Source: Octopus bimaculoides
Taxonomy: Eukaryota
NCBI RefSeq assembly: GCF_001194135.2
Contig: NC_068991.1
Location: 16,146,438 to 16,206,991 of the forward strand
Direction: 5' to 3'
Length of the DNA stretch: 60,554 nucleotides
Shown here piece by piece: positions 3,746 through 60,554 of this stretch. How positions within the stretch are numbered: position 1 is the stretch's first letter; every line of letters starts with the position of its first letter. The position numbers and the translations under genes were made by a program. The notes under the pieces were generated by a model. The model worked only from the letters and a program-made list of their open reading frames with translations. It was not told where the DNA came from and did not search any database.

Positions 3746-4137
3746 GTTGTTGTTGTTGTTGGCACTCCGTCGCTTACAACGTCGAGAGTTCCAGTTGATC
3801 CGATCAACGGAACAGCCTGCTCGTGAAATTAATGTGCAAGTGGCTGAGCACTCCACAGACACGTGTACCCTTAACGTAGTTCTCGGGGATATTCAGCGTG
3901 ACACAGTGTGACAAGGCTGAGCCTTTGAATTACAGGCACAACAGAAACAGGAAGTAAGAGCGAGAGAAAGTTGTGGTGAGAGAGTACAGCAGGGTTCGCC
4001 ACCATCCCCTGCCGGAGCCTCGTGGAGCTTTAGGTGTTTTGGCTCAATAAACACTCACAACGCCCAGTCTGGGAATCGAAACCGCGATCCTATGACCGCG
4101 AGTCCGCTGCCCTAACCACTGGGCCATTGCGCCTCCA
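3746..4137 (-). mobile_element. SINE family B, full length (tRNA-derived head, (CAA)n tail)
   Basis: Head GGCGCAATGGCCCAGTGGTTAGGG...GGTTTCGATTCCC carries Pol III A/B boxes; 13-bp TSD cctacataggaat. Confidence 0.92.
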
Positions 4138-4472
4138 CCTACATAGGAATAACCAGTGCCTTATTAACACAATGACATATTTTTGCGGTAAGTACTGTGC
4201 TTGGAAGTACAAATCAATGAAAAGCAATTAAGTTCACACTATAAGAGATAATTCATGCAGAAAATGTTAATGAGTACCTTTTATTCCACCAGACAGTAGT
4301 GCAAATAGTGGCAGGTGGGTAGAGACAATGATGGGGTGTTGTAACATGACCTGACAAGTGATTTCTCACTCATATGTGGGTGAGAATCCTAGATGTTTTC
4401 CAGATATTGTCTTCCCTTTTTTTTTTATTGTTTACAGTATATTTTGTTTTAGTTTTAATCTTATCGTTTATT

Positions 4473-7224: not shown

Positions 7225-7434
7225 TTTATTCCCTCCAGAGAGAGAGTGGGAAAGAAAGAGAGAGGTAAAGAGAGATACAGTTAAAGGAGAGAGGAAGAAA
7301 GAGAAAAAAGGGTAGCTAGAAAGACAAAAGAGCAAAAAAAGAGAAGTAGAGATAAGAAAGACAGCTGGAGAGAAAGTGAAAATCAGAGAGACACAGAGAA
7401 ATGAACTAGACAATGAGAGAGAGAGAGAGAGAAT

Positions 7435-7468
<34 letters not shown>

Positions 7469-7830
7469 ATAGAGAGAGAGAGAGAGAGAGAGAGAGAATG
7501 GAGAGAGAGGATAGAGAATAGAGAGAGAATAGAGAGAGAGAGAAAATAGAGAGAGAGAGAATAGAAGAGAGAGAGAAAATAGAGAGAGAGAATAGAGAGA
7601 GAGAGAGAGAGAGAGAGTAGAGAGAGAGAGAGTAGAGAGAGAGAATAGAGAGAGAGAGAATAAAGAGAGAGAGAGAATAAAGAGAGAGAGAGAATAAAGA
7701 GACAGGCAGATAGACAGATAGATAGACGGAAAGAGCAAGAGAGAGCCTAGAAGATATAGGATGAGAGATGTGGGCTAGAGAGCAAATGAGATATGAGAGT
7801 GAGAGAGAGAAAAAGAGATAGAGACAAACA
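7225..7830 (+). repeat. ~600-bp (AG)n/GAATA purine-rich tract
   Basis: Direct sequence; source of the LSLSLS ORFs. Confidence 0.95.
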
Positions 7831-7859
7831 GACAAATACTACTGAAGTGAGTCACTTAC

Positions 7860-7944
7860 TCTTGCAGTCTTTGGTCTCCATCTAATTCGTCACCAATACA
7901 CCGTAGAGCACGTCCTATTTCTTCTAGCTGAGACATCGGTGGAC
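7860..7944 (-). CDS. BAX: BAX-like exon encoding BH3, phase 1 to 2, 85 nt (absent from ORF track)
   Basis: Acceptor tattttgatccAG|(7944) and donor GA|GTAAGT(7859). Translates GPPMSQLEEIGRALRCIGDELDGDQRLQ(D), a canonical BH3 LxxIGDELD. Phases match both neighbouring exons. Confidence 0.93.
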
Positions 7945-8838: not shown

Positions 8839-8985
8839 CTGTTGGTGTGTCTGGTTCGATGAGGTTGGACTCTTGCAGAGGATTTTCAAAGCCTTCATTT
8901 TCCATTCTGTCATGGATGAACTGGTTCAGCAAACACCGCGCCTGGTTGCCCACGTCATCTCTGTTTAAGTTTTTCCTGGGCGGTT
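8839..8985 (-). CDS. BAX: BAX-like apoptosis regulator, internal coding exon (helix alpha1), phase 1 to 1, 147 nt
   Basis: Acceptor ttttatttctgcAG|(8985) and donor G|GTAAGT(8838). Translates PPRKNLNRDDVGNQARCLLNQFIHDRMENEGFENPLQESNLIEPDTPT; LLNQFIHDR matches the BAX alpha1 LLQGFIQDR pattern. Confidence 0.9.
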
Positions 8986-9729
8986 CTGCAGAAATAAAAT
9001 AAAATAAAATAATTGAAGGGCAATGGTCATACAACAAATAACATAAGAAGAAGCAAAAAGAAGTGAAAATTTCAGTTCTACAGAGGAACCAATGGCAGAA
9101 AAAAACAAAACAAAACAAAACCCTCTCTCAATATATTTCAAACCTATTTACAATGAATATATACACACATAGTCAGTAGCTGTGTGGTTAGGAAGTTTGT
9201 TTCCATATCATGAGGTTTGAGGTTCAGCCCCATTGTGTGGAACACTAGGCAATTGTTGTTCTACTATACCTCAGGTTGACCCAAACCTTCCAGATGGATT
9301 TGGCAGACAGAAACTGAAAGAGAGTGTGTGTGTGTTATCATTATTGTAATGCCCTCTTTTCCATGCTTGCATGGTTCAGGTGGAGTTGAGGTGGATTTTC
9401 TACAGCTGGATGCCCTTCCTGTCACCAACACTTATTTGTTTCTGTTATGTCTCAATGCTACTGCTATCTAGCACCTTCAGATTATCTCTACTCAACCACT
9501 ACACAACTGCTACTCGACTGCTACTCAACACTCTACCACAGTCAGACTACCTCTATTTATGTCTTGGGAGATCCTACTTTTTCGCCTGGGTGCGACGACA
9601 CAACAGTTATTTCCTCATGGCCAGACAAGTTTCTGCAGAATAATGGAAATGAATGGTATTCATTGACAACAGTCATGTGATATCATGACAAGGAGAGAGA
9701 AACACACACACACACCTGACTGTGTATAT

Positions 9730-10115
9730 TACTCTTTTACTTGTTTCAGTCATTTTACTGCGGCCATGCTGGAGCACCGCCTTTAGTCGAGAAAATCGAC
9801 CCCAGGACTTATTCTTTGAAAGCTTAGTACTTATTCTATCGGTCTCTTTTTGCCGAACCGCTAAGTTACGGGGACGTAAACACACCAGCATCGGTTGTCA
9901 AGCAATGGTGGGGGGACAAACACAGACACACATACATATATACATATATACGACGGGCTTCTTTCAGTTTCCGTCCACCAAATCCACTCACAAGGCTTTG
10001 GTCGGCCCGAGGCCATAGTAGAAGACACTTGCCCAAGGTGCCATGCAGTGGGACTGAAATTGGAACCATGTGGTTGGGAAGCAAGGTTCTTACCACACAG
10101 CCACTCCTGCGCCCT
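9730..10115 (-). mobile_element. SINE family A, near full length
   Basis: tactcttttacttgtttcagtc...ccacacagccactcctgcgcc. Confidence 0.9.
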
Positions 10116-10530: not shown

Positions 10531-11361
10531 TTAACCCTTTCGTTACAATAGTTCTGACCAAAAACACTGCCTTTGTTTCAATTAATTTCAAAGATTATAA
10601 AAAATTTAGTAAAAATAATTGTCATTATCAATCTGATGATTAAGGCAGCAATCTGGCAGAATTGTTAGCATGCCAGGCAACATGCTTAGCAGCATTTTGT
10701 CCGTCTTTCTATATTCATCATCATCATCGTTTAACGTCCGCTTTCCATGCTAGCATGGGTTGGACGATTTGACTGAGGACTGGTGAACCAGATGGCTACA
10801 CCAGGCTCCAATCTGATTTGGCAGAGTTTCTACAGCTGGATGCCCTTCCTAACGCCAACCACTCCGAGAGTGTAGTGGGTGCTTTTATGTGCCACCGGCA
10901 CAAAGGCCAGTCAGGAGGTACTGGTAACGGCCACGCTCAAAATGGTGTATTTTACGTGCCACCTGCACAGGAGCCAGTCCAGCGGCACTGGCAACGATCT
11001 CACTCGAATGTCTTTTCACATGCCACTGGCACAAGTGCCAGGAAGGCGATGTTGGTAACAGTCACGCTCAAATGGTGCTCTGAGTTCAAATTCTTTCACA
11101 GTCTACTTTGTCTTTCATCCTTTCAGGGTCAATGAAGTAAGTACCAGTTATGTACTGGGGTTAATATAATTGACTAGCACCTCCCCTAAAATTTAAGACC
11201 TTGGGCCTATAGTAGAGAGGATTATTAATCTAATGATTGGAACATAAAATAACATGAAATTTAGATGAAAAGTGTTTTAGATCACAGCACAAGGGGCTGG
11301 TATTAAAACAGAAAGCTTGTATCATAGAACCAAGTGGCAAGGTTAGTACCGAGAGGGTTAA
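10531..11361. mobile_element. TTAA-flanked piggyBac-like MITE (E2) carrying nested SINE C and family D
   Basis: TTAA|ccctttcgttac ... gtaccgagaggg|TTAA. SINE C at 10640-11225 is split by D at 10722-11075. Confidence 0.75.
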
Positions 11362-11683: not shown

Positions 11684-12354
11684 GGCAGGTTTGTGTGAAG
11701 AGAGTTAAGCAGCTGTCTCCTGTCTTAATGCCTTGTAAATGAAGTTTGGTACAGACAGAATAGCAATCACGAAATATGGATATCGATATGCTAATAAAGT
11801 CATGTAAAATGATTCTGAACAAATATGTATCAGGCTTCATTAGAGTCTTTACAAATAAACATTTTGATGTAGGCCAAGAAATATTGATTTATGAAAGCTC
11901 CTATACAAATGTTTTTTAAAAGAGTTCTAAATTTTCAATTCAATACTAACTGAGTTGTGCGTATGAAGTTTATACCAATAGAAAGGGTACACAGTATAAT
12001 TGTTTTGATTCATTTCAATTTGCTTTATTTCCATTTTGTGATAAACGCATTAAGTGATAACCACAGCTGTTTTATGCAATATATCCATATAGAAAAATTG
12101 ATGTATAAACTTCAAAGAATATATCCTCAATATGAAGAGTTCAATTAATACATTGTTGTTAGACCAGAATACTTTATTATACTGCAATAAATCCAAGTGT
12201 GACCAACTTGGGTTTATATACATGATCAACTAAAACAATCTTTAAGAACAACATATTTTAGCATAAAAAGCATAAAATTGCATATAGAGTTCATACTTTA
12301 ATTGTAGTCAACAGCTGTTTCATTATGATAAACACAATGAAATGTATAATAATC

Positions 12355-12540
12355 ATCATCATCGTTTAACGTCCGCCCTCCATGCTAGCATGGGTTGGAC
12401 GATTTGACTGAGGACTGGTGAAACCGGATGGCAACACCAGGCTCCAATCTAATTTGGCAGAGTTTCTACAGCTGGATGCCCTTCCTAACGCCAACCACTC
12501 AGAGAGTGTAGTGGGCGCTTTTACGTGTCACCCGCACAAA
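12355..12540 (-). mobile_element. family D element whose internal unit is expanded into a minisatellite
   Basis: catcatcatcgtttaacgtccgcc... consensus runs directly into the 60-bp array. Confidence 0.85.
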
Positions 12541-13403
12541 AACGGCCACGCTCGAAATGGTGTCTTTTATGTGCCACCCGCACAAGAGCCAGTCCAGGGG
12601 CACCGGCAACGATCCCGCTCGGAAGATTTTATGTGTCGCCCGCACATGAGCCAATCCACGGGCACTGGCAACGATCCCGCTCGAGAGACTTCATGTGTCA
12701 CCCGCACAAGAGCCAGCCCAGGGGCACCAGCAACGATCCCGCCCGAAAGATTCCATGTGTCGCCCGCACACGAGCCAGCCCAGGGGCAANNNNNNNNNNN
12801 NNNNNNNNNNNNNNNNNNNNNNNNNNNNNNNNNNNNNNNNNNNNNNNNNNNNNNNNNNNNNNNNNNNNNNNNNNNNNNNNNNNNNNNNNNNNNNNNNNNN
12901 NNNNNNNNNNNNNNNNNNNNNNNNNNNNNNNNNNNNNNNNNNNNNNNNNNNNNNNNNNNNNNNNNNNNNNNNNNNNNNNNNNNNNNNNNNNNNNNNNNNN
13001 NNNNNNNNNNNNNNNNNNNNNNNNNNNNNNNNNNNNNNNNNNNNNNNNNNNNNNNNNNNNNNNNNNNNNNNNNNNNGCCAGCCCAGGGGCACCAGCAACG
13101 ATCCCGCTCGAAGAAATTTCATGTGTCACCAGCACAAGAGCCAGTCCAGGGGGACTGGCAACGATCTCGCTCGAAAAACCTCATGCGTCACCCGCACAAG
13201 AGCCAGTCCAGGGGCACCGGCAACGATCCCGCTCGGAAGATTTTATGTGTCGCCCGCACATGAGCCAATCCACGGGCACTGGCAACGATCCCGCTCGAGA
13301 GACTTCATGTGTCACCCGCACAAGAGCCAGCCCAGGGGCACCAGCAACGATCCCGCCCGAAAGATTCCATGTGTCGCCCGCACACGAGCCAGCCCAGGGG
13401 CAA
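12540..13403 (+). repeat. GC-rich ~60-bp minisatellite interrupted by an N gap
   Basis: Unit ~ttttatgtgtcacccgcacaagagccagtccaggggcaccggcaacgatcccgctcggaaga, about 4 units left and 5-6 right of the gap. Confidence 0.92.
12790..13076. other. assembly gap (others: 15619-16490, 17752-18125, 23596-24170, 25021-25688, 44748-44842, 53265-53433, 54500-54584)
   Basis: N runs; most abut (TA)n or other repeats. Confidence 1.
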
Positions 13404-13569
13404 ATTGTAAAACAGTGTTTACTCAAACCATCAAGAATATTATGCTATGTTAATCAGAAAAACATTACTGTTTATATAACAGAGGAGAATTTTACATGCT
13501 GCCTCTCTGCTGTTGCAAAACATTGACACTAAGGTGTGAAACTCAAACTTAAGTCTATCATTGTCATCA

Positions 13570-14188
13570 TCATCATCATCATCGTTTAACGTCTGCTTTC
13601 CATGCTAGCATGTGTTGGACGAAGCCAGAAGGCTGCACCAGGCTCCAGTCTGATCTGGCAGAGTTTCTACAGCTGGATGCCCTTCCCAATGCCAACCACT
13701 CTGAGAGTGTAGTGGGTGCTTTTACGTGCCACCGGCACGAAGGCCAGGCAGGCAGTACTGGCAACGGCCACGCTCTAAATGGTGTATTTTATGTGCCACT
13801 TGCACAGGAGCCAGTCCAGCGGCACTGGCAACGATCTCGCTCGAATGTCTTTACAAGTGCCAGGAAGGCAACGCTGGGCACAAGTGTCATCACGATTTTG
13901 CTTTTGCTTGCCACGACAGGTCTTCGCAAGCCGAGTTTCATGTCCAATGAAGGAGACGACATTGGCATGGATGCCAGTCGTCGAATTTAGTTCGATTTCG
14001 ATTGCCTCAACAGGTCTTTGCAGGCGGAGTTTAGTGTCCAATGAAGGAAAGGTACACATAGGTGGGCTGGCCACACTCCTGACAAAGGCCTTGGATTTAG
14101 GTCTCACTTGGCTTGCCAGGTCTTCTCATGCACAGCATATTTCCAAAGGTCTCGGTCAGAAGTCATCGCCTCGGTGATGCCCAAAGTT
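13570..14188 (-). mobile_element. RTE-clade LINE 3' fragment (last RT codons + 3'UTR + (GAT)n tail)
   Basis: Its 13920-14188 part is the reverse complement of 35180-35430, which follows RTE RT coding sequence. It is contiguous with the family D motif, linking D to the RTE 3' end. Confidence 0.8.
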
Positions 14189-15618: not shown

Positions 15619-16611
15619 NNNNNNNNNNNNNNNNNNNNNNNNNNNNNNNNNNNNNNNNNNNNNNNNNNNNNNNNNNNNNNNNNNNNNNNNNNNNNNNNNN
15701 NNNNNNNNNNNNNNNNNNNNNNNNNNNNNNNNNNNNNNNNNNNNNNNNNNNNNNNNNNNNNNNNNNNNNNNNNNNNNNNNNNNNNNNNNNNNNNNNNNNN
15801 NNNNNNNNNNNNNNNNNNNNNNNNNNNNNNNNNNNNNNNNNNNNNNNNNNNNNNNNNNNNNNNNNNNNNNNNNNNNNNNNNNNNNNNNNNNNNNNNNNNN
15901 NNNNNNNNNNNNNNNNNNNNNNNNNNNNNNNNNNNNNNNNNNNNNNNNNNNNNNNNNNNNNNNNNNNNNNNNNNNNNNNNNNNNNNNNNNNNNNNNNNNN
16001 NNNNNNNNNNNNNNNNNNNNNNNNNNNNNNNNNNNNNNNNNNNNNNNNNNNNNNNNNNNNNNNNNNNNNNNNNNNNNNNNNNNNNNNNNNNNNNNNNNNN
16101 NNNNNNNNNNNNNNNNNNNNNNNNNNNNNNNNNNNNNNNNNNNNNNNNNNNNNNNNNNNNNNNNNNNNNNNNNNNNNNNNNNNNNNNNNNNNNNNNNNNN
16201 NNNNNNNNNNNNNNNNNNNNNNNNNNNNNNNNNNNNNNNNNNNNNNNNNNNNNNNNNNNNNNNNNNNNNNNNNNNNNNNNNNNNNNNNNNNNNNNNNNNN
16301 NNNNNNNNNNNNNNNNNNNNNNNNNNNNNNNNNNNNNNNNNNNNNNNNNNNNNNNNNNNNNNNNNNNNNNNNNNNNNNNNNNNNNNNNNNNNNNNNNNNN
16401 NNNNNNNNNNNNNNNNNNNNNNNNNNNNNNNNNNNNNNNNNNNNNNNNNNNNNNNNNNNNNNNNNNNNNNNNNNNNNNNNNNNNNNNNNNCTATCAAGTG
16501 ATCACAAAGTAATATCAACCTTTACTTGTTTAAAAAAACACACAAAAAGGTCAGAGAAAAAAACGATATTTTACTTTGTATTTATTGATTAAAAAAATGT
16601 GGATTTCCTAC

Positions 16612-16657
16612 CTTGTGTAGATTTGATCATGGTGCAATGGACATTCAAGGAATACAT
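16612..16657 (-). CDS. candidate start-codon exon of BAX (MYSLNVHCTMIKSTQ-E, or from the second ATG at 16630)
   Basis: In-frame ATGs at 16657 and 16630 run to CAAG|GTAGGA(16611) in phase 1; G+AA gives Glu on joining exon 8985. It lies ~400 bp downstream of the p53-site cluster. No homology support. Confidence 0.3.
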
Positions 16658-17053
16658 AATATAAATAGGGAACTAGTTTGGATGATGTTGGATGAAGAAG
16701 AAAGCGATAATGATTGTGATGGTGGTAATGATGATGGATATTAATTATTCACTTGAAGACTGGGCCGTCTCCAAAAACAATTTCCTTCTCACAGCACATT
16801 ACAGCTGATCTATTATTATTTTTTTTTTTTGTTTCGTCACGAATAAACAAACCAGTTTTTCTTTAAAATAAATTGTTTTTATTTTCAGTGTGCACTAAAA
16901 AAAAACGATGTCTTTTTACAATAATATCTCAATATTTTTTTTTTCTTTTCTTAAGCCATTGCTAGAGACTTTTTTTTTTCCACTTTTTACTTTCACTTCA
17001 ATACACCACCAACTGATATGTTTTCACCCAAGTTTCACCTTTCAATATCCTTC

Positions 17054-17710
17054 AGGCAAGTCTTCTTCACATATTTTTATACTGCAGCCATGCTAGACAT
17101 GATATTACAAGCTTACAGACAGGTCTTCTTCATATGAGATTTTACTTCACAGCCAAGCTAGACACTTACAAAAGTTCTTTCACTTCAACAAAGATCTAGC
17201 CAACATTTTGTTTGCTGGGATTTTTTTTTTTCCTGTTTATTTTCCTTTTATACTTCAGTCAAGCGAATCAAGTTTCGGCAAGCTCTTTAAACTTTAACTA
17301 CGCTACACGCAACTTTACTTCAACCAAGCAGCAGCAGCAACAAGACAACTTTGTGCATGCACGTTCCTTTCACTTTCAGACTTACTTCAGACAAGATTCA
17401 ACCTGTTCTGTCTTCAGCCAAGCCACAGACACGTCTGAACAGATAACATCCCCGCACCAAGTTATAAACAAGTCTTGACACGTTCTGTTAAGGGGCTTGC
17501 ACAGACTTGCACTATGCAAGGCCCCCCCCCCACTTCCATAAAACACGTCTCAACATGGCTGTGCAAGCCTTCTTTCACTAAACAAGTCTCAACATGTTCT
17601 ATGAATGCTGGGAACATGTCTGTGCAGGCTTTTGTTACTGCTTCAGCGTGCAGCTGAAGACAAGTTTCAACATGAAATTTTAAAATTCAAAGTTGTTTCG
17701 AAACAGGTTC
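17054..17710. promoter_or_regulatory. homotypic cluster of p53/p63/p73-type response elements (RRRCWWGYYY)
   Basis: Perfect decamers at 17054 AGGCAAGTCT, 17466 AAACAAGTCT, 17580 AAACAAGTCT, 17612 GAACATGTCT and 17658 AGACAAGTTT. Many 1-2 mismatch decamers sit back-to-back with zero spacer, e.g. 17580-17599 AAACAAGTCT|CAACATGTTC. Confidence 0.75.
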
Positions 17711-18254
17711 CTGGCACATTAAGTCTAAAAAGTATATAAATGCATATAACGNNNNNNNNNNNNNNNNNNNNNNNNNNNNNNNNNNNNNNNNNNNNNNNNN
17801 NNNNNNNNNNNNNNNNNNNNNNNNNNNNNNNNNNNNNNNNNNNNNNNNNNNNNNNNNNNNNNNNNNNNNNNNNNNNNNNNNNNNNNNNNNNNNNNNNNNN
17901 NNNNNNNNNNNNNNNNNNNNNNNNNNNNNNNNNNNNNNNNNNNNNNNNNNNNNNNNNNNNNNNNNNNNNNNNNNNNNNNNNNNNNNNNNNNNNNNNNNNN
18001 NNNNNNNNNNNNNNNNNNNNNNNNNNNNNNNNNNNNNNNNNNNNNNNNNNNNNNNNNNNNNNNNNNNNNNNNNNNNNNNNNNNNNNNNNNNNNNNNNNNN
18101 NNNNNNNNNNNNNNNNNNNNNNNNNATATATATATATATATATATATATAAAATGGTATTTTTGCTGCAACTTGAATGTTTAGACCACAATGTAGTCTGC
18201 TGTGGCATGTTGAGTATACGACTACTTCACTGCTCCACTTCACATTTCTTCAGC

Positions 18255-18600
18255 AACTTATACGTAGCTAACTAACTACCATCAATACCACCAACTATAT
18301 ACCCTTACAGTTAACCCTACCACCACTCCTCGGCTATTGCTACCACCACTCTCACTACTACTACTACTACTACTTCTACCACCTCTATACCCGTTTCACT
18401 GTGACCATCATTATTCTGCCACCACTACCATTCCTCTCGCTGCTACCCCTACTACATATACCACTACTCTGCTCCAGTCACTGCTACCATCACTCCTCAG
18501 CTACCACTATCTCTGCAACTACTATCCCTATCACCACCAACACCATATTCACCATTGTAATTATTTTCTGCCACTACATTCATGACCAACTTCTACCATA
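18255..18600 (+). repeat. degenerate (ACT/ACC)n trinucleotide tract
   Basis: Direct sequence. Confidence 0.8.
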
Positions 18601-19344: not shown

Positions 19345-19640
19345 ATAAACATCAAAACATTGCATAGAGTGGGCAGAAGACCAAAGAGATTTATGGACAC
19401 ATTCCACTCATCTCTAGTGATATTGCTCAGTCCAGGGTAAGCTTTGCCGGTTACTGCGTTCATGCTGAACAACCTGATACCATATCAGATGATGTATTTT
19501 AGAGACTAGCGCACCCCAATAGAAGACACAGACTACTCATCTACACTGATGTTATTGGCAAAGACACACAACAGAAAATTGAGGACCTACCAAAGCTAGC
19601 CGGGGAACTGAGATTCCTAGCATGGCAGGCTATGACATCT
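19345..19640 (+). mobile_element. decayed non-LTR retrotransposon RT C-terminus (RTE-like)
   Basis: QNIA*SGQKTKEIYGHIPLISSDIAQSRVSFAGYCVHAEQPDTISDDVF*RLAHPNRRHRLLIYTDVIGKDT resembles the RxRFAGHC...LLW...RGR post-RT region. Confidence 0.7.
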
Positions 19641-19732
19641 TGGTTGCGGCCACTTGAAGCAGAATGTCTTCTATTTGTCTTGTAAGTGTTGCGGAGATGT
19701 TGTATACAAATCATATTTACATACGCTGTGCG

Positions 19733-20636: not shown

Positions 20637-20807
20637 CTTTTTTACTCTTTTACTTGTTTCAGTCATTTGACAGCGGCCATGCTGGAGCACCACCTTTAGT
20701 CGAAGAAATCAACCCCAGGACTTATTCTTTGTAAGCCTAGTACTTATTCTATCGGTCACTGTTGCTGAACCTCTAAGTTACAGGGACGTAAACACAGACA
20801 CACAAAC

Positions 20808-20854
<47 letters not shown>

Positions 20855-21020
20855 CACGACGGGCTTCTTTCAGTTTCCGTCTACCAAATCCACTCACAAG
20901 GCTTTGGTTGGCCCAAAGCTATAGTAGAAGACACTTGCCCAAGGTGCCACGGAGTGGGGCTGAACCCGGAACCATGTGGTTGGTAAGCAACCTACTTACC
21001 ACACGCCACTCCTGCACCTA
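20637..21020 (-). mobile_element. SINE family A
   Basis: Full consensus with internal (TA)n. Confidence 0.88.
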
Positions 21021-21785: not shown

Positions 21786-22222
21786 CTGTTATTTTTATTA
21801 TTATTACACCTGTGTGTGCTTTGTTATTAAGGCTGGAAAACATTAACCTTGTTTATTGAAAATTTTGGATCCGGGTTTGCACCCGCTATGTATATTTTAG
21901 TCACACACTAATGTCCAGAAATAAATCTTTCAAAAATGATGGTATCTGTTTATTTTACGAGATGTCTGTGTACACATATCAGCAATTAATTTATTTGCAA
22001 ATAGCAATCATTATATTATTCCTACTAATATTAGGAATCCCAAGACTTCATTAAGCTGATTGAACACATCAGGGAAAATTCTAAAGGACCTTTTAAAATT
22101 ATGCATAGTGTGCAAACAAAATTTTCAAGTTGCTTCAATGAATTTATGAGGATGAATCCCACAATAATAATGTGTGGATGTGTTTGTATAGTTAGAAGCC
22201 TAACTGGTAGACTAAACAATAT

Positions 22223-22597
22223 GTTGTTGGCATTCCGTGGCTTACGGACGTCGAGGGTTCCAGTTGATCCAATCAACAGAACAGCCTGCTCGTGAAATTA
22301 ACATGCAAGTGGCTGAGCACTCCACAGACATGTGTACTCTTAACGTAGTTCTCGGGGATATTCAGTGTGACAAGGCTGACCCTTTGAATTACAGGCACAA
22401 CAGAAACAGGAAGTAAGAGGGAGAGAAAGTTGTGCTGAAAGAGTACAGCAGGGTTCGCCACCATCCCTGCCAGAGCCTCGTGGAGCTTTAGGTGTTTTGG
22501 CTCAATAAACACTCACAACGCCCAGGTCTGGGAATCGAAACCGCGATCCTATGACCGCGAGTCCGCTGCCCTAACCACTGGGCCATTGCGCCTCCAC
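22223..22597 (-). mobile_element. SINE family B, full length
   Basis: 14-bp TSD agactaaacaatat (22209 / 22598). Confidence 0.92.
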
Positions 22598-26290: not shown

Positions 26291-27019
26291 TTTGTTTATC
26301 CTTGTTTGTCCCCTCTATGTTTAGCTCCCGGTGGGCAATAAAGAAATATTTTTCTCCCCATAAATACATTTAATAGAATGATGATGCACCCAAGGGAGGT
26401 CCATTGCTGGGGATTTAAGCAAAAAAATACCACAAAGCATTCTTTCGACATTTCTAATGATACTGCTCTCCGCCGGTAAACATGAGGGCGGTATAATGAC
26501 TCTTTCTACTGTAGGTACAAGGATAAAAGTCGAACTCGACCTCGGCAGAATTTGAATCTAGAACAATAATATGCCGAATGAAATGCCGCTCAGCATTTTG
26601 TCCGGTGTGCTGATGATTCTGTCAGTCCATCGCCCTTTTTATCAGTAATAATATAACCTACTTTTAAGCATTTAGGATAAACAAGTTATTTTTGTATATT
26701 CGCCACTATTGTTGGTCACATTTGAATTAATAGGCACGTGTAGACACACACACACACACACACACACGCATGAAAGACAGTGGCATTCTTTTGATTAATT
26801 CAGCTTAAGGTTTACCACACACATGCGCACATACATCTATTTAGCGACAGTGGTATTCCCTATTATTGTTGGTGTCATTTTAATTAACATAGCTTTGGTC
26901 AAAGATTACCACACCCACACATACATACATAAACCAGCTGTTTAACAAAAGCATTGCCTTGATTCGGTAACCCCACCCTAACCCTAACCCCCACCGCACT
27001 CAAGGACGACTGAACTGAC

Positions 27020-27960
27020 CTTAGTGAATGTGCAATGACGTTTATCTGTTGAGAGGAAGATAGAAAGCAAAAATAGAACGTGTAACGGAAGAGGTAGGAG
27101 AAAAAAAAAGTAAGAAGAAAAGCGTTAGAAACAGAAAGAATACGTGTCGAAAAAGAAGACATCAGAAAAAAAAAAGTAAAAGACGAAATAATAGCTCGTT
27201 TGTTGTAGAGCAATGTGTAGAAATTAGGGTAAAAATGCAGTTCGTGTGACTGAAATACACGTGAGCAAATGGTGCGCGTTGGCACGTATGTACTTGTGAG
27301 TTTGCGTGTGTATTTTTGTGTATGTGGCTGAATTTGTGTATATGTGTCAGTGAGGATGTGGGGACGGCCGTTTGATGGCGAAGTTGGTATGATAAAGAGT
27401 GTCGTGCCGTGGCTCTTTGCAATAGAATGGCGGGAATTATCGACATATATACACACACACACACACACATATATAAGGAGAGAAGAAGGATCAAAATATA
27501 TTATCTATTTATTATCTCTAGCAGTGACAGAGTGGCTTTACAATTTCCAGGAATTCTGATAAGTAATTCTCTTGTAATAGCGATGAGTCGAAAGGAAACG
27601 GGGTCGAAATAAGCCGATTATTATTTAAACCCTGGCCACAAGCAGGCCTCTACGTAATTACTCCACTTAGCAGATATAGCAGTCAAATCGCTCTTGAGCC
27701 ACACACACACACACACACCACTCTCTCTTTATCACCAGGAAAATGACACATAAGATAATGTAGTCAGGGATATACAAAGAGAAAGTGGGCGATCTCGACT
27801 CGATTACAGGGTTAACAAGCTCTGAGGTGTTTTCTTTCCCCCCTTCATACACACTAATAGCTCTGTAGAGGAGCATGAAGCCGCCCTTCCTCATCTGACT
27901 AAGCAATAGACCCCCCGTCGTCACGCGCTACGCTAGGCCAGTTTAAAAGGAATTCTTATG
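27020..27960 (-). promoter_or_regulatory. CpG-rich candidate promoter / non-coding first exon
   Basis: Local CpG enrichment, E-box CACGTG (~27258), GC-rich elements near 27880-27935, and a consensus minus-strand donor AAG|GTCAGT at 27019. No transcript evidence. Confidence 0.4.
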
Positions 27961-28404: not shown

Positions 28405-28781
28405 GTTGTTGTTGGCACTCCGTCGCTTATGACGTCGAGGGTTCCAGTTGATCCGATCAACGAAACAGCCTGCTCATGAAATTAACGTGCAAGTGGTTGA
28501 GCACTCTACCAACACATGTACCCTCAACGTAGTTCTCGGGAATATTCAGCGTGACAGTGTGACAAGGCTGACCCTTTGAATTACAGGCACAACAGAAACA
28601 GGAAGTAAGAGGGAGAGAAAGTTGTGGTGAAAGAGTACAGCAGGGTTCGCCACCATCCCCTGCCGGAGCCTCGTGGAGCTTTAGGTGTTTTCGCTCAATA
28701 AACACTCACAACACCCGGTCTGGGAATCGAAACTGCGATCCTATGACCGCGAGTCCGCTGCCCTAACCACTGGGCCTCCAC
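28405..28781 (-). mobile_element. SINE family B inserted into a family A SINE (28305-29065)
   Basis: 12-bp TSD ctcttctactat (28393 / 28782) lies inside the A core; small deletion at the B 5' end. Confidence 0.9.
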
Positions 28782-31928: not shown

Positions 31929-32470
31929 TTAACTCTTTAGTGTTTAAATTGGTCATATCCGGCTCATGTATGCTACTTGTTTATACTCTAGCCTGCCAGA
32001 TCCAGCCTGTCACATCTTTCTTTCAATGCTATTATAAAATACACAATCATCATTATCATCATCATTCGTTTAACGTCCGCTTTCCATGCAAGCATGGGTT
32101 GGACGATTTGACAGAGGACTGGCGAGCCAGATGGCTGCACCAGGCTCCAATCTGATCTGGCAGAGTTTCTACAACTGGATGCCCTTCCTAATGCCAACCA
32201 CTCCGAGAGTGTAGTAGGTGCTTTTACGTACCACCGGCACGAGGGCCAGTCAGGCAGTACTGGCAATGGCCACACTCAAATGGTGTTTTTTACGTGCTAC
32301 CTGCACAGGAACCAGTCCAGCAGCACTGGCAACGACCTCGCTCGAATGTTTTTTCATATGCCACCGGCACAAGTGCCAGTAAGGCAACACTGGTAAGCAT
32401 GATTAATTAAAAATAATGTGAATGAAAAATCATTACATTTGACAGAATAATGTGAATGCTAAAGGGTTAA
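31929..32470. mobile_element. E1 TTAA-MITE containing a family D insertion (32055-32395), itself inside an E2 MITE
   Basis: TTAA|ctctttagtg ... gaatgctaaaggg|TTAA; the flanks rejoin as ggtcagt-TTAA-aacagg. Confidence 0.8.
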
Positions 32471-34073: not shown

Positions 34074-34924
34074 GGTTTTTAGAAAGTGTCCTCATTCAAA
34101 CAATTTCAACAAACCATTGAAAAAAAAATAACTCCTATGTGACTGCTCAGCCAACTAGAAATAGTAGCCAGGTCTCACCCAAATCACATCCTACTATTTT
34201 AATAGAAACGTCAAAAAAGGAAGGACACATTGGACAATATGGAGCAATATATACCTCTACGCCAGTGATTAAAGATGGGATGGTCATGGCCGGAACATTT
34301 TTAATCATCGGGCCTACTGGATCAGAGCCAAATATGTTGGTGACTAAGCAACAGACAATAGCCATAGCAACAATTGCACTCTGAGTCCTGGCAGATAAAT
34401 TTTACGAACTGAAAAGCTTATCTTTTCTTTTTTATCAGTGAAACACACAAGATATAAAATGGACACATTCATTTTATTTTCGTTTTTTACCAGTGCAAGC
34501 AAAGGTTAAATGAGAAGGTATTTGAGGTAGTTTTTTTTTGTTTTTTACAGCCAGATGTTCTTACTGCAACTAACTTTCAGCTGTTTTTCAAGTTTTCAGG
34601 TTAAGAAATTTTGATTCCATAGAAATTCACAAATGCAAAGCCAGTATATAATATGATTTGTTGACAGGATATGTCAATATCACTAAGCACAGCACAACTG
34701 TATGTACATACACACATGTACATTAGTGTGTGTGTATCTATGTTATACTTAAGTATTATAATAGGTGCAAGTATGTGGCTGAGTGGTTAAGAGGTCCACT
34801 TCCCAACCATGTTGGTCTGAGTTCAATCTTACTGCATAGCACATTTGGTAAGTATCTTCTACCAACCTAAGGTTGACCAATGCCTTGTGAGTGGATTTGG
34901 TAGGTATAAACTGGAAGAACGATA

Positions 34925-34968
<44 letters not shown>

Positions 34969-34977
34969 GTCAATGTG

Positions 34978-35465
34978 CATACTCGACAGAGTGTAAGTAC
35001 CTTGAGAGAAAAGTTGGACCTAAGAAGCATCAGATGTGGTGTGCAAGAGAGACAATTGCGCTGGTATGGTCATGTGGCGAGAATGGATAAGGATAGCTGT
35101 GTGAAAAAGTGCCATACCCTAGCGCTTGAGAGAACCTGTAGAAGAGGTAGACCTGGGATGAGGTGGTGAAGCACAACCTTTGAACATTAGGCCTCATAGA
35201 GGCAATGGCCAGTGACTGAGGCCTTTGGAAATATGCTGTGCATGAGAAGACCCAGCAAGCCAAGTGAGACCATAACTCATGGCCTATGACAGGGGTGTAA
35301 CCAGCCCACTTATGTGTACCTTTCCTTCATTGGACACTAAACTCTGCTTGCAAAGACCTGTTGAGGTAAGTGAAATCGAAATCAAATCAAATTCACAAAT
35401 TCGATGACTGGCACCCATGCCGGTGGAGCGCAAAGAGCACCATCCGAGTGTGATCGTTGCCAGAG
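34978..35465 (+). mobile_element. RTE-clade LINE 3' fragment
   Basis: RQSVSTLREKLDLRSIRCGVQERQLRWYGHVARMDKDSCVKKCHTLALERTCRRGRPGMRW carries the RTE-type LRWYGHVxRM...RGRP signature. Confidence 0.88.
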
Positions 35466-36689
35466 CACTTATTCTATCCATCTCCTTTTGCCAAACTGCT
35501 AACTGATGGAAACATAAACAAACCAGTGTTGGATGTCAACAGTGGACAAACAAAGATATACATACACACATACATATATAATGGGCTTCCACAAAGTTTC
35601 CATCAATCAAATTTACTTATAGGGCATTTATTGGTTAGTCAAAGCAATAGTAAAAAACACTCAAGGTACCGTGCAATATATTTGAACCTGAAATCATGTA
35701 TTTATGAAGTGAATTTCTTAACCACACAGCCATACCTGCACTTATATTCTAAATGAGTGTGTGAGTGTGTGCACACATGCAAATATCTATAAATGTTGAT
35801 ATCACACAGCTTCATTTGTTACCACTTGACCAAAACAGTGAGATGTTTACGTTTCTTGGTGACATTAGGACTGGTCATTCTTCATCAGTACATCATTTGA
35901 CCAGTCTCAGAGAAATGAGCAGCCAAACTACTAATCCACTCAACAAATCTAGTAACTACAGAGAACTGGAGCTACTAATTTGTATAACATAAGTGTTTCA
36001 CACTTCATTTAAAATATCAGCAGTCTGTCAACAGCTAAATATATACACATATATGCACAGTTGGTATTTTGCTCAAAATATTTTGAATATTTTGTGTAAA
36101 AGAATTCAACTTACTGCAATATAGGGCAAGAAGGAAAATGAAAACATTTTGTAGCATAATTTTCCTTAGAGTTTTACAAAACTGGATTGCTTCATGAACG
36201 ACAAAATGCCTAATAAAACTTATTTGTGATAAATAATAATAAAAAAACCAAAACAAATCAAGTAGCTAATAATTGAATAATTGTATGACATTTTTATGGG
36301 GGTGAAATGTTGCTGGTAATTTAAAACTAAAACATGAGTTGATCTTTTAATCAGAAAACCTACAAACTGTTAAAAGTTCAGCAAGTACTCTGTACAAGTT
36401 TACGGAGAACAAAAATTCTTTGTTACAAAACCTTTGATTCAAGGGTTGTTTTTTTCATGAAACTGAAGGATTTTGTCGCACTTATAAATTTAGGGTTAAA
36501 AATTTTAACAATTTCAGGTAATGCTACAAGTCAATGATGTGCATTGGGTAACATTGGCTAAAATGTTATGCTATTTTTACCACTGAATGTGGCATCACTG
36601 TTACACAGCCACTGGACTTGGGAATTTCAGTAATGTTCAAGATGACCTGCTTGTGGAAGGCTTTTGTCCAGGATAACGGTACGAAAATA

Positions 36690-37058
36690 TATCTTTTACT
36701 TGTTTCAGTCATTAGACTGGGGCACCACCACGAAGAATTTTTAGTTGAATGAATTGATCCTGGTACTTATGCCTTTTGTTAAGCCCGGTACTTATACTAT
36801 TGGTCTCTTTTGCCAAACTGCTAAGTCATGGGGAGTAAACACACCAAAACTGGTTTTCAAGCAGTGGTGGAGGACAAACACACACACACATATGATGGGC
36901 TTCTTTCAGTTTCTGCCTACCAATTCCATTCACAAGGCTTTGGTTAGCCTGAGGCTATAGTAGAAGACACTTGCCTAAGGTGCTAAAGGGGGGGACTGAA
37001 CCCAGAACCATGTGTTTAGGAAGCAAGATCTTTACCACACAGTGATGCCTGCACCTAT
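36690..37058 (-). mobile_element. SINE family A
   Basis: Consensus match. Confidence 0.8.
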
Positions 37059-37674
37059 ATGAAGTAAATTTTTAATTTTTTGAAATATCTTACAGAAAAC
37101 AACATAAAAATCAATATAACTAGAAAAAGAAATTAAATAAGATTCAGTTTATTTTATGAATGTATTGACATGAATCAGCAAATGCAAAAACAGTTTCTTT
37201 AAATATTTCTAAAACAGATGTTTGCTTTGATATATTTTATTTTCATTGTACATGACCCTGTAGCTGTTGAGTGCATTTTTAATTTGTTTTCTGATTTGTG
37301 TTGTTTTCTGTACATTTGAATCTTTATCTATTAATCATGGTGTTAAGAAGAACATCCAACTATAAAAAAAAAACATGTCAACTAAATCATTGGAACAAGA
37401 TATGATTCTTCTGACTTGGATGCTGTCAACCCATCCAGTACATTACCAGTAAGGAAAACAGGCATAGAATAATAAAAATTATGATTTTCCCAAAATTTTA
37501 AGTTAACTTTGAGATCTTTAATCCATTTGTTACTATATTTCCCTTGAAAAAAAACTGACTTTATTTCAATTAATTTTTAAAATAATGAAGAATTTACTCA
37601 AAATAATTTTGTTGTTATTAAACTGGTGTTTGGAAAAAAAAGTAACTAAAAAAATTTGATGGGAAATTTTAACC

Positions 37675-44711: not shown

Positions 44712-44974
44712 TAGGTGCAGGAGTGGCTGTGTGGTAAGTAGCTTGCTNNNNNNNNNNNNNNNNNNNNNNNNNNNNNNNNNNNNNNNNNNNNNNNNNNNNN
44801 NNNNNNNNNNNNNNNNNNNNNNNNNNNNNNNNNNNNNNNNNNAGTCCCACTGCGTGGCACCTTGGGCAAGTGTCTTCTACTATAGCCTCGGGCCGACCAA
44901 TGCCCTGTGAGTGGATTTGGTAGACGGAAACTGAAAGAAGCCCGCCGTATATATGAATATATATATATACATAC

Positions 44975-45011
<37 letters not shown>

Positions 45012-45208
45012 TGTGTTTGTCCCCCCAACATCGCTTGACAACCGATGCTGGTGTGTTTATGTCCCTGTAACTTAGCAGTTCGGCAAAAGAGACCGTTAGA
45101 ATAAGTACTAGGCTTCCAAAGAATAAGTCCTGGGGTCAATTTGCTCGACTAAAGGCGGTGCTCCAGTACAGCCACAGTCAAAAGACTGAAACAAGTAAAA
45201 GAGTAAAA
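44712..45208 (+). mobile_element. SINE family A, full length, with an N gap in the head
   Basis: ggtgcaggagtggctgtgtggtaag...gaaacaagtaaaagagtaaaag. Confidence 0.9.
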
Positions 45209-45254
45209 GCATTATTATAGATTTTGTAAAGCCAATAATTAGGATTGCCTTATT

Positions 45255-45852: not shown

Positions 45853-45946
45853 GGTGAAACTGTAACTGCTAAAATAAAGAAGAAAGGTGGTAGAGAAAGT
45901 TTTGAGACCTCTATCGGCAACAAAAGTCTCTACTTCAATAAGCAAG

Positions 45947-46338
45947 GTGGAGGCGCAATGGCCCAGTGGTTAGGGCAGAGGACTCGCGGTCGTAGGATCA
46001 CGGTTTCGATTCCCAGACCAGGCGTTGTGAGTGTTTATTGAGCAAAAACACCTAAAGCTCCACGATGCTCCGGCAGGGGATGGTGGCGAACCCTGCTGGA
46101 CTCTTTCACCACAACTTTCTCTCACTCTTACTTCCTGTTTTTGTTGTGCCTGTAATTCAAAAGGGTCAGCCTTGTCACACTGTGTCACGCTGAATATCCT
46201 CAAGAGCTACGTTAAGGGTGCACGTGTCTGTGGAGTGCTCAGCCACTTGCACGTTAATTTCATGAGCAGGCTGTTCCATTGATCGGATCAACTGGAACCC
46301 TCGACGTCGTAAGCGACGGAGTGCCAACAACAACAACG
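45947..46338 (+). mobile_element. SINE family B, full length
   Basis: 9-bp TSD ataagcaag (45938 / 46339); (CAA)n tail. Confidence 0.92.
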
Positions 46339-49330: not shown

Positions 49331-51329
49331 GCCTGCACTTTTAACAGAGTCATTCTTTTATAAAACTCTAGATCTCTCTTTGCCTATGTCTCTTATTGCA
49401 GACGTTGACACAATCTACATATGTTCAGGTTGAACATTAACCAGCCATCAGCGAAAGGAAGAGAGTCCTGCAAATGACATAGGTACTGCTTCTACTCCTC
49501 CTCTTTCTTGTCTTATCAATTCTCAAAGTTCAAAAATTTGTATTGTGAAAACTGTTATCTATGAGATCATTGAAGAAGTCCTCCGATGGTGAGTAAGAAG
49601 CTCTCAAATGGTGGTCTAGCAACACACACACACACACACAGATGTATATCATTGCCATCATTTAACATACATTTTTCCTTGATTGTACGGACCACAATGA
49701 ATCTATCAAAGCAGATTTTCTAGGGCAAGATGTCCTTTGTGTCATGAACCATCACCTGTTTCCAAGCAAGGTTATACTGCCCAAGACCAGATATGGTTTT
49801 CAAGGAAACTGAAAATGAAGAACACCTCAGAATGATGGTGATGGTCATTTACTACCACCATATGATGCCAAGACAAGGATACACACACACACACAACACT
49901 CTCCTTCCACCAAATCCATTCACAAGGCTTTGGTCAGCACAGGGATACAGTACAAGACACCCAAAAGTACCATACAGTGGGACTGAACCCAAAAGCACTT
50001 AACTAGGAGACAAGCTTTACAACCATACCTGTGCCTTACACACACACACACACATGCACTTACATGTATACACAAATATATAATATATATATATATATAT
50101 ACATGCATTAGGAAGGGCATCCAGCTGTAGAAGAGCTACCCAGGCTTCATGTCTGTTTTGGCATGGTTTCTACAGCTGGATGCCCTTCCTAATGTCAACC
50201 ACTTAACAGAGCATACTGGGTGCTGTTATGCAGCACCAGCATGGGTGCTTTTTATGTGGCACCAGCAAGATTAAGAAAGCTGAGTTGAAGAGGGATGCAG
50301 GGGACACCTCTGTTTTGGTAAAATGTAACAGTTGTAAATGAACATCACCACCATAAAAGCGATGTTGTTCATTTCTAGTCTTGCATGGTAAAACATGCCT
50401 AGCTACAGGGAAATATTACCTTGCATTAAAACAGGTCGAAGTTGGCAACAGGAAGGGCATCTGGCTGCAGAAAATCTGCCTCAACAAATTCTGTCTGAAC
50501 CATACAAGCATGGAAAACTGGACATTAAACGATGAAGTCAATCTAATAAATATCAGTGAAATTGGGAGCCCTTAACACATTAAAATACACTTTACATCTA
50601 CTAGGAGTCAGTACATCAGTACATTTTTACCAATCCCCCTGACTTCAGTAACCCAGTAATTGGTTCAGACCGACTCCACAGCTGTGGCTAGAATGCCTTT
50701 GATCTTAGCAGTTTAATCGTGGTTGATGTGAAGCTAAAAACAATAACAAAAGGAAAGGCATATTAGATAATGTAGTCCAAGATAAGTCTAAAAATATATA
50801 GGATTGACATGGATTTTCCACCTTTTATCATGAGTGTACTTGTTTAGGGTTGGTTGATCTTGAATAAACAACAGCTTGAGACTTTGGCCCTGCCTTGTTG
50901 TTGTAACTGCAGGTGTTACCACAAGTGGTACAAAGAGATCTAAAGATCTACACGAGCAACACCAACCTTTCCTTTAAGCCATAAACCACAGACAAAAAGA
51001 GGAGGTGGGACTATGCACATGTTTGTATGTGTGTACACATACACATATATATATCTTTTACTTGTTTCAGATACTGAGCTGCAGTCATGCTGGAGCACTG
51101 CCTTGAAGGGTTTATTAGCTGCATAAATCAACCCCAATACTTATAAACAGAGCTGTGTAAGACGAATAGTCTTCATACTGATGACATGCAAGAATGCAGA
51201 AGTGCAAGCATCCGACAATCTGATGATATCATTCATAGCTTAATGTGTTTTCCTACATTCTGTCTGTGAGAAGAATTTTCTTCTCAGACTATTTTTACAG
51301 AGAAAGATTTTCCCATGTTTCAGTGTTCT

Positions 51330-51710
51330 TTTATTTGTTTCAGTCACTTGACTGTGGCCATGCTGGAGCACCGCCTTTAGTCGAACAAATCAACCCCAGG
51401 AGTGAATCTTTGTAAGTGTAGTACTTATTCTATCAGTCTCTTTTGCTGAACCACTAGGTTACAGGGACGTAAACAAACCAACATCGGTTGTCAAGCAATG
51501 GTGGGAGACAAACAGACACACAAACATATACATATATATATATACAACGGGCTTCTTTCAGTTTCTGTCTACCAAATCCACTCACAAGGCTTTGGTTGAC
51601 CCGAGGCTATAGTAGAAGACACTTGCCCAAGATGCCATGCAGTGAGACTGAACCTGGAACCATGTGGTTGGGAAGCAAGTTTCTTACCACACAGCGATGC
51701 CTGCACCTAT
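51330..51710 (-). mobile_element. SINE family A
   Basis: Consensus match. Confidence 0.85.
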
Positions 51711-59600: not shown

Positions 59601-60554
59601 ACTACATATACACAGATGTGTGTGTGTGTATATATACATATATACACTCTTGCACACACTTAAAAAGAAAGTGAAAGACTATTTGCAACAGCGAGTGTTT
59701 AACGGCAAAATTAAATATTTGTTGTGAGTTGTTGAAGACTATAATCAGACTACATAATCATGTTACTAATCACTTGAGTATAAGTATTTTCATTAAGAAA
59801 ATAGTTCTTTTCTGGTTAATTTCTTTTTTTTTTTTTACATTGTTTTCGTTTTATACAACACTTTTCCCTCCTAGCCGCTGTCCATTTTTTTTTCCAGACG
59901 ATAGCATTGGCAAGAAGAAAAGAATAGCGTAAAAAATAAAAACGTAACACAACGTGAAAGAGTAACACATGAATATAGTAAGATAAGTCTGACTGACTGA
60001 TAGATGACAAGCGAAAAAACAGATCGACTTACTAGCCCGTATTTTTCTCTCCTCGAGATCCATGGTATTTCGTGAAAAAACGTAGTTTTAGACTGTATGT
60101 TTAATATATATATATTTCTGTGTGTGCGTATATGAGTTTTCCACTTTCTTTCGATTATAAATATATCTGTTTATATATAAATATCTTTTTTTTTTAGCTT
60201 CCCACTCGCTTGCTCATTAGGTACGACCCATGAATTACAAGTCCATGTGTATGCTGGAAGCTAATGCTAAAGTGCCCGACACGTGGCGCCACCACACCAA
60301 TTAGCAAAATACTTGCGGGGAGACAATTAAATGACAGGAGCAGATAACTCTTGTCATATGTTTCGCTGAGTTTTATCTCTTCATAGACAAGGAAAAAGTA
60401 TTAGAGACCAGTGTCTTCTATTATAGCCCCGGGCTGACCAAAGTTCTGTGAGCGTATTTAGTAGAAGGAAAGTAAAAGAAGCCTGTCGTGTGTGTGTATG
60501 CATGTATGTACGTAAAAAAAGACATTTATATATAGATAGATGTATGTATGTATA

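Follow-up and report, generated by a model that had tools for sequence, protein, structure and literature searches.

A candidate p53-family-responsive array in the first intron of BAX in octopods

The array in BAX intron 1

The 60,554-nucleotide stretch of Octopus bimaculoides DNA analysed here (NCBI RefSeq assembly GCF_001194135.2, contig NC_068991.1, positions 16,146,438 to 16,206,991; hereafter the window) carries the gene BAX on its minus strand, and a segment within that gene (17054–17710, strand not assigned) holds a degenerate array of half-sites and full sites resembling p53-family response elements. The spliced exons are 100% identical to 'apoptosis regulator BAX', which confirms the mollusc BAX named by a sequence-only reading of this DNA. 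That reading also placed the array upstream of BAX exon 2, correctly for a minus-strand gene: the array sits in the canonical intron 1, 51 kb long, at a distance of 8.07 kb from the shared exon 2 (8839–8985, minus; xPPRKNLNRDD...). Two further 5' coding exons, used alternatively and also on the minus strand, lie in the same intron. The exon of isoform X1 (19591–19714, MICIQHLRNTYK...) lies 1.9 kb upstream of the array, and the array in turn lies 397–1053 bp upstream of the exon of isoform X3 (16612–16657, MYSLNVHCTMIKSTQ; tblastn 100% identity), which is found in O. sinensis and O. vulgaris too. The coding part of canonical exon 1 (60033–60063, minus; MDLEERKIRA; isoform X4) matches the Argonauta start MDIGDIKTR, and the first exon of isoform X2 (MRNLPYV...) was not found in the window. 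On its upstream side the array is bounded by an assembly gap (17752–18125). The O. sinensis DNA that matches this gap (~64355–64773 of the O. sinensis locus L002) consists of (TA)n and an insert resembling a short interspersed element (SINE), so the gap hides nothing relevant; this counterpart contains no more p53-like sites, except a half-site matching window 17701–17710.

The excess of p53-like decamers is purely local. A p53-family response element consists of two RRRCWWGYYY decamers with a spacer of 0–13 bp, usually 0. The five perfect decamers that had been reported for the segment are all present, starting at 17054, 17466, 17580, 17612 and 17658. At the window rate ~0.20 would be expected in 657 bp, and dinucleotide shuffling of the segment gave 0.36; none of 1000 segment shuffles attained five. 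Across the whole window the count equals the shuffle expectation (19 perfect decamers vs 17.6 ± 3.9 in dinucleotide shuffles), from which the local nature of the excess follows. Relaxing the match gave the same picture, with 19 half-sites with at most one mismatch in the segment vs 4.1 in local shuffles, and five full sites with at most two mismatches vs 0.04, with 0 of 1000 shuffles attaining five. Five of the seven zero-spacer 20-mers with at most two mismatches in the whole window fall in these 657 bp, where one zero-spacer pair has a single mismatch, five have at most two and nine have at most three. A p53-like scan of the window ranked the cluster first by a wide margin. Judged by motif content, the candidate array appears largely to conform to the sequence criteria for a p53-family response element.

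Eight blocks of contiguous half-sites had been described, and all eight lie where they were placed, but their quality is uneven and the block at 17658 is really a lone half-site. Seven of the eight fall in the array core (17389–17677), which is the best-kept part of the array in O. sinensis and O. vulgaris; the orthologous full sites of the core (at most two mismatches) lie at 64940–65056 of L002 (O. sinensis) and 64289–64405 of L006 (O. vulgaris). The best full site, AAACAAGTCT CAACATGTTC at 17580–17599, has zero spacer and, as claimed, one mismatch in total (0 and 1 in its two decamers), and it is identical in O. sinensis. Next to it within the core are the full sites AAACAAGTCT TGACACGTTC (17466–17485; 0 and 2 mismatches), whose second core is CATG in O. 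sinensis so that one mismatch is left, GAACATGTCT GTGCAGGCTT (17612–17631; 0 and 2), whose first core is CGTG in O. sinensis, and GGGCTTGCAC AGACTTGCAC (17493–17512; 1 and 1), which is inverted relative to its neighbours, in line with the inverted repeats I1 and I2. A triple half-site, AAACACGTCT CAACATGGCT GTGCAAGCCT (17541–17570; 1, 2 and 1 mismatches), has CAACATGTCT as its middle decamer in O. sinensis. The weak full site AGACAAGATT CAACCTGTTC (17389–17408; 1 and 2 mismatches) opens the core, and at its other end the perfect half-site AGACAAGTTT is followed by a poor decamer with four mismatches (17658–17677), the block being identical in O. sinensis. Outside the core, the peripheral full site AATCAAGTTT CGGCAAGCTC (17266–17285; 1 and 1 mismatches) is disrupted in O. 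sinensis, where a core has changed and 1 bp has been inserted, and the lone perfect half-site AGGCAAGTCT at the exon-near edge (17054–17063) is shifted there by an indel. The CWWG core is present in both halves of the blocks at 17266, 17493 and 17580, and in the first half of those at 17466, 17612 and 17658. The sense-strand consensus of the array is GAACATGTTG AGACTTGTTT.

BAX exons 3 (7860–7944), 4 (2010–2142), 5 (592–690) and the coding part of exon 6 (248–358) follow exon 2 on the minus strand. The canonical promoter zone (~57.9–60.5 kb) is CpG-rich, with CpG observed/expected of 1.1–1.3, and includes a block (60271–60351, minus) kept in Argonauta hians with 79.5% identity over 83 bp (9727–9807 of the Argonauta locus L001). 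This block contains the palindrome GGTGGCGCCAC and is the sole non-coding, non-repeat stretch aligned by BLAST between Octopus and Argonauta. A CpG-island-type promoter was rejected for the array, where CpG observed/expected is 0.42. Midway through the intron there is another CpG-rich island (27000–27700), with CpG observed/expected of ~1.2–1.3. In the newer assembly the BAX gene range spans 134 kb and harbours, on the opposite strand, nested TatD-DNase and EGF-domain genes.

Exon 4 encodes a changed BH1 signature, in which NWGR is replaced by TWDI in O. bimaculoides and Argonauta and by SWDT in a third cephalopod-like sequence (P0003). Human, gastropod and bivalve BAX all keep NWGR, and the altered cephalopod-type sequences also have a one-residue deletion just before this motif. 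The BH1 change is lineage-specific and affects a motif that is normally important for BCL-2-family function.

Repetitive DNA is frequent elsewhere in the window. Like the O. sinensis and Argonauta loci, it contains numerous copies of at least three SINE-like families of ~300–400 bp. Within the window one family is represented at 9725–10108, 20640–21012, 36687–37059, 44843–45209 and 51327–51695, another at 10715–11032, 12352–12651, 13556–13847 and 32046–32370, and another at 3762–4144, 22230–22597, 28415–28776 and 45946–46324. Tandem SINE-like copies at 10.7–13.9 kb yield long spurious open reading frames. An open reading frame at 34891–35169 (plus strand), with the motif ...RQLRWYGHVARM..., resembles the C-terminal fragment of a reverse transcriptase of the long interspersed element (LINE)/RTE type. 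Between BAX exons 2 and 3 there is a long purine/pyrimidine-asymmetric microsatellite (7383–7835) with a GC skew of +0.46 and frames reading SLSLSL....

The cluster at other mollusc BAX loci

The cluster is shared by four octopods and, among the loci compared, is restricted to them. We examined the BAX loci of eight further molluscs and scored the maximum number of zero-spacer full sites (at most two mismatches) in any 400 bp. This maximum was five in the O. bimaculoides window, in O. sinensis (L002, 103 kb) and in O. vulgaris (L006, 100 kb), and three in Argonauta hians (L001, 40 kb). It was one in Haliotis cracherodii (L003), Mya arenaria (L007) and Mytilus coruscus (L008), and zero in Patella vulgata (L005) and Argopecten irradians (L004). 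An equivalent cluster at other BAX loci thus exists in O. sinensis, O. vulgaris and Argonauta hians but not in the five gastropod and bivalve loci. Of the ancient or convergently rebuilt p53-to-BAX circuit suggested by the sequence-only reading, an ancient, mollusc-wide version is not supported. If the element is functional, its octopod-specific distribution would mean convergent rewiring. A match at the BAX start codon of Mya arenaria was rejected as chance, being coding sequence in which the second core is lost.

The array can be aligned across the three Octopus loci. The window is colinear with L002, where the array aligns at ~64814–65537, and in each of the three species no other p53-like cluster of the locus comes close to it in score. 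The differences in O. sinensis improve some sites and damage others.

In Argonauta, the top p53-like cluster of the 40-kb locus also lies in BAX intron 1, 1.3–1.6 kb upstream of exon 2. Its zero-spacer pairs begin at 22247 (AATCATGTTC AGACTTGTCA), 22289 (AAACATGTCA GTGCATGTCT) and 22342 (ATGCATGTTT GGACCTGTTT), and more sites start at 22205, 22441 and 22490, with a spacing of 42–53 bp and one 99-bp gap. The three full sites compare with 0.02 in local shuffles. Analyses with no p53 prior recovered the motif: a repeat finder reported the unit AAARRCATGTCAGRACA five times in Argonauta, and k-mer enrichment returned AACATG and CATGTC-type words in both genera. The orientation of the sites relative to the gene agrees as well, as seen from the Octopus consensus GAACATGTTG AGACTTGTTT and the Argonauta pair AATCATGTTC AGACTTGTCA. 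BLAST between Octopus and Argonauta left the array unaligned and aligned only the exons, SINE-like repeats, the canonical promoter and a CATCAT microsatellite. A profile built with nhmmer from the three Octopus arrays gave two colinear plus-strand matches in the Argonauta cluster, which are non-significant (E = 0.23 and 0.91) and are the only non-microsatellite matches in that locus. What the Argonauta cluster shares with that of Octopus is the motifs alone, at the same relative place in the gene.

Perfect decamers alone are weak evidence for such a cluster. In Haliotis cracherodii, a satellite with homogeneous 25-bp units (ACAGGACAAGTTCCTGCAGATAC; L003 27000–27560) lies ~10 kb downstream of BAX and carries 13 perfect half-sites of the GGACAAGTTC type over its units, with zero full sites or zero-spacer pairs, which makes it a useful negative control for decamer counts. 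It is like the octopod array in that perfect RRRCWWGYYY decamers are clustered by tandem repetition, but it differs in its homogeneity, its strict 25-bp period, its lack of zero-spacer pairs and the lack of any positional relation to BAX exons.

Constraint, decay and rival explanations

We put the prospects at about even that the array is an octopod-specific p53/p63/p73-responsive intronic enhancer or internal promoter. This candidate reading is favoured because of the enrichment beyond composition, the zero-spacer pairs and the rank as top cluster in four octopod loci. The proposal of a p53-family enhancer or promoter on a mollusc BAX thus survives in part: the array is real, locus-specific, present in four octopods and plausibly positioned, but neither the phasing attached to it nor an ancestry across molluscs is retained. 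The block starts are irregular, at intervals of 27–77 bp, and over 16500–18500 Tandem Repeats Finder detected nothing beyond short T-rich and AT repeats, and no array.

Several observations weigh against a p53-responsive element. The segment is without any perfect 20-mer, and one half of the blocks at 17389, 17466, 17541 and 17612 has a CACG, CCTG or CAGG core. CpG observed/expected in the array is close to the window average (0.42 vs 0.46). Between O. bimaculoides and O. sinensis, substitution identity is 0.93 in the cluster and 0.90–0.94 in ten other intronic blocks, and block positions are no better kept than spacer positions (0.917 vs 0.935, Fisher p = 0.49), in a constraint test that has low power at ~7% divergence. 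No equivalent cluster was found in the Haliotis, Patella, Argopecten, Mya and Mytilus BAX loci. The X3 exon may be a cassette exon instead of a true first exon with a transcription start, because a pyrimidine-rich tract and an AG lie directly upstream of it. Since the sites belong to duplicated units they are not independent, and a single chance resemblance to a p53 site could have been amplified by duplication. Finally, by binomial arithmetic on the per-site probabilities of the simulation described below, an ancestral array of 10–20 near-perfect units could have reached the present state by neutral decay with a joint probability of ~0.04 under the most favourable assumptions.

Local duplication probably shaped the array. 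The sites are part of degenerate duplicated units recovered by the repeat finder (e.g., TAAACAAGTCTYRACAYGTTCT and AACATGKCTGTGCARGCYTT), with 64–93% identity and irregular spacing, and the duplications include an older one of ~253 bp as well as others of 39–65 bp. A 253-bp three-unit model was tried and holds weakly, with units 1 and 2 ~66% identical and unit 3 a misfit. This pattern is consistent with an ancient series of duplications that has since decayed. When the segment was compared with the window by self-BLAST, the result bore out the earlier statement that it belongs to no repeat family seen elsewhere in the window. The array is not a high-copy repeat within the window and the eight further loci (~360 kb), in which BLAST found no second copy. 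No terminal inverted repeats were seen, so that within these ~360 kb the array does not look like a dispersed repeat or transposable element.

The main rival, which we consider unlikely though it deserves the most weight of the alternatives, is that the array is a neutral relic of this history. An old local tandem duplication or decayed minisatellite, possibly derived from a transposon, would have had a unit that chanced to resemble a p53 site, and the resemblance to Argonauta would be residual shared ancestry with no regulatory role. The internal repeat families with their 253-bp and 39–65-bp duplications, the neutral substitution rate within Octopus with motif positions not favoured, and the average CpG observed/expected all agree with such a relic, and the Haliotis satellite illustrates how tandem repeats carry chance perfect half-sites. 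Against it, the units share almost nothing beyond the 20-bp motif (0.2 bits in the flanks vs 0.76 bits in the site, a comparison that is partly circular, match having been the basis for choosing the sites), no array is reported by Tandem Repeats Finder, and no second copy exists in the ~360 kb searched. A random 40-bp unit would have odds of ~1 in 1000, by our estimate, of containing a full site with at most two mismatches, and the host gene is a canonical p53 target.

The distance between Octopus and Argonauta bears on neutral decay. In BAX, 49% of four-fold degenerate sites differ between the two genera, giving a Jukes-Cantor distance of 0.78. (Between O. bimaculoides and O. sinensis, 1 of 77 such sites differs, or 1.3% in a small sample, and introns differ by ~7%.) A simple neutral simulation was run from a site with zero or one mismatch, with survival counted as still having at most two mismatches. 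The survival probability per site was 0.10–0.20 at 0.39 substitutions per site, which is not negligible and stands in favour of the relic, and 0.01–0.02 at 0.78 substitutions per site. Binomial arithmetic on these values for five of ~16 units in Octopus together with three of ~8 in Argonauta gave a joint neutral probability of ~0.04 to 0.0006. Neutral survival of a once-perfect tandem array is thus disfavoured. The persistence is noteworthy because the intron is otherwise unalignable at a Jukes-Cantor distance of 0.78, yet motif content and orientation are kept; motif class, orientation and gene position surviving ~0.78 substitutions per site counts against a relic. We take the motif-level persistence as moderate, not decisive, evidence of constraint.

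A functional cis-regulatory array read by another factor is a less probable alternative, and we regard it as rather improbable. The relevant words would be palindromes of the ACATGT/CAAGTC type, or CTTCAG and GTGCAAGCC. Non-p53 words are indeed enriched, namely CTGAAG, CTGTGCA and CAAGCC in Octopus and AGGCAC and CTGACA in Argonauta, and a purine, off the consensus, recurs at position 10 of the first decamer. However, these extras differ by genus, and the words common to both genera are only the p53-type core, AACATG and ACATGTC. Known p53 sites vary most freely at positions 1 and 10, and zero-spacer RRRCWWGYYY pairs are the signature of p53-family tetramers, both of which count against another factor. 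A structured RNA or long hairpin, such as an intronic small-RNA precursor, is very improbable and was rejected, because the strong fold of the sense-strand RNA of 17380–17700 (z = -6.1 vs shuffles) is not conserved in the Argonauta array (z = -0.74), an Rfam search returned no match, and excess folding is expected of palindromic sites in both orientations (inverted repeats I1 and I2).

The candidate element and its known counterparts

The density of motifs, the zero-spacer site architecture, the position in the gene and the equivalent cluster in four octopod species are direct observations. Binding by the octopod p53-family protein, inducibility and an effect on BAX expression are what we infer from them. 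The array would be a homotypic cluster of response elements for a single octopod transcription factor of the p53/p63/p73 type, which probably originated by local tandem duplication of a unit of ~40 bp with one 20-bp site. Under genotoxic or other stress, several p53-family tetramers would bind the six to nine candidate sites, and the bound array, serving as an intronic enhancer or an internal promoter, would inducibly increase BAX transcription. Such a mode of action would resemble that of the mammalian BAX intron-1 element or the MDM2 P2 promoter. A fuller proposal is that the array is a natural multimer of at least six p53-family response elements, tandem-duplicated, maintained by selection from a time before Octopus and Argonauta diverged, and working as a stress-inducible internal enhancer or promoter, which would represent an independent, convergent wiring of p53 to BAX; we advance it tentatively, as somewhat short of an even prospect.

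Published work bears on such a link. Proteins of the p53 family retain their DNA-binding specificity even in Drosophila (PMC2807882). A single p53/p63/p73 gene is present in molluscs, among them the squids Euprymna and Loligo, and in molluscs generally it has all four domains (PMC5543598). In human and mouse, BAX belongs to the core set of genes that p53 targets directly, and it has one element in its promoter and another, conserved, in intron 1 (PMC5511239, PMC6755996); as cited in PMC5511239, the promoter element goes back to Miyashita and Reed 1995 and the intron-1 element to Thornborrow et al. 2002. In cephalopods, a p53-to-Bax link has only been speculated upon (PMC10607546). The mammalian BAX elements share with the octopod array the target gene, the pairs of RRRCWWGYYY decamers and the position in intron 1. 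Unlike the array, with its six to nine candidate sites in 300–650 bp, they consist of single or few overlapping half-sites and are experimentally validated. The octopod array shares no sequence homology with them, is octopod-specific and is known from sequence alone.

Other p53-regulated systems resemble the array in part. MDM2 P2 has two p53 sites in intron 1, a defined transcription start and an inducible transcript. Its sites, like the candidate sites of the octopod array, occupy intron 1 a short way ahead of an alternative 5' exon, but P2 has two sites and a defined start, whereas the octopod X3 exon may be a cassette. Synthetic reporters of the PG13 type contain 13 tandem p53 sites; they share with the array many zero-spacer sites at short intervals, and the array differs in being natural, degenerate, irregular and imperfect. 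Repeat-derived p53 sites are known from the pentanucleotide microsatellite of TP53I3/PIG3 and from the LTR10/MER61 retroviral long terminal repeats (LTRs), where, as in the octopod array, repetitive DNA supplies p53 or p53-like sites. The TP53I3/PIG3 element is a non-canonical microsatellite and LTR10/MER61 occurs in many dispersed copies, whereas the octopod array occupies one locus in the ~360 kb searched and has 20-bp sites of the canonical type.

The age of the p53-BAX link is the wider question to which this array speaks. In the two classic protostome models, fly p53 drives apoptosis via reaper, hid and sickle and worm p53 via egl-1 and ced-13, with no known route through a BAX-type gene, and the link may therefore be older than vertebrates or may have arisen repeatedly. 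The absence of the cluster from the gastropod and bivalve loci examined points to a lineage-specific acquisition. The apoptosis genes that molluscs have retained form a vertebrate-like set (PMC5543598), and the octopod BAX array, dense and conserved within its lineage, offers a concrete, testable element. Should the array prove non-functional, it would be a caution that duplicated DNA near a famous target gene can mimic a regulatory module. If the p53-responsive reading is true, the array would be a natural equivalent of the multimerised p53 reporters, would show tandem duplication generating an array of binding sites, and would be an instance of p53-BAX wiring outside vertebrates.

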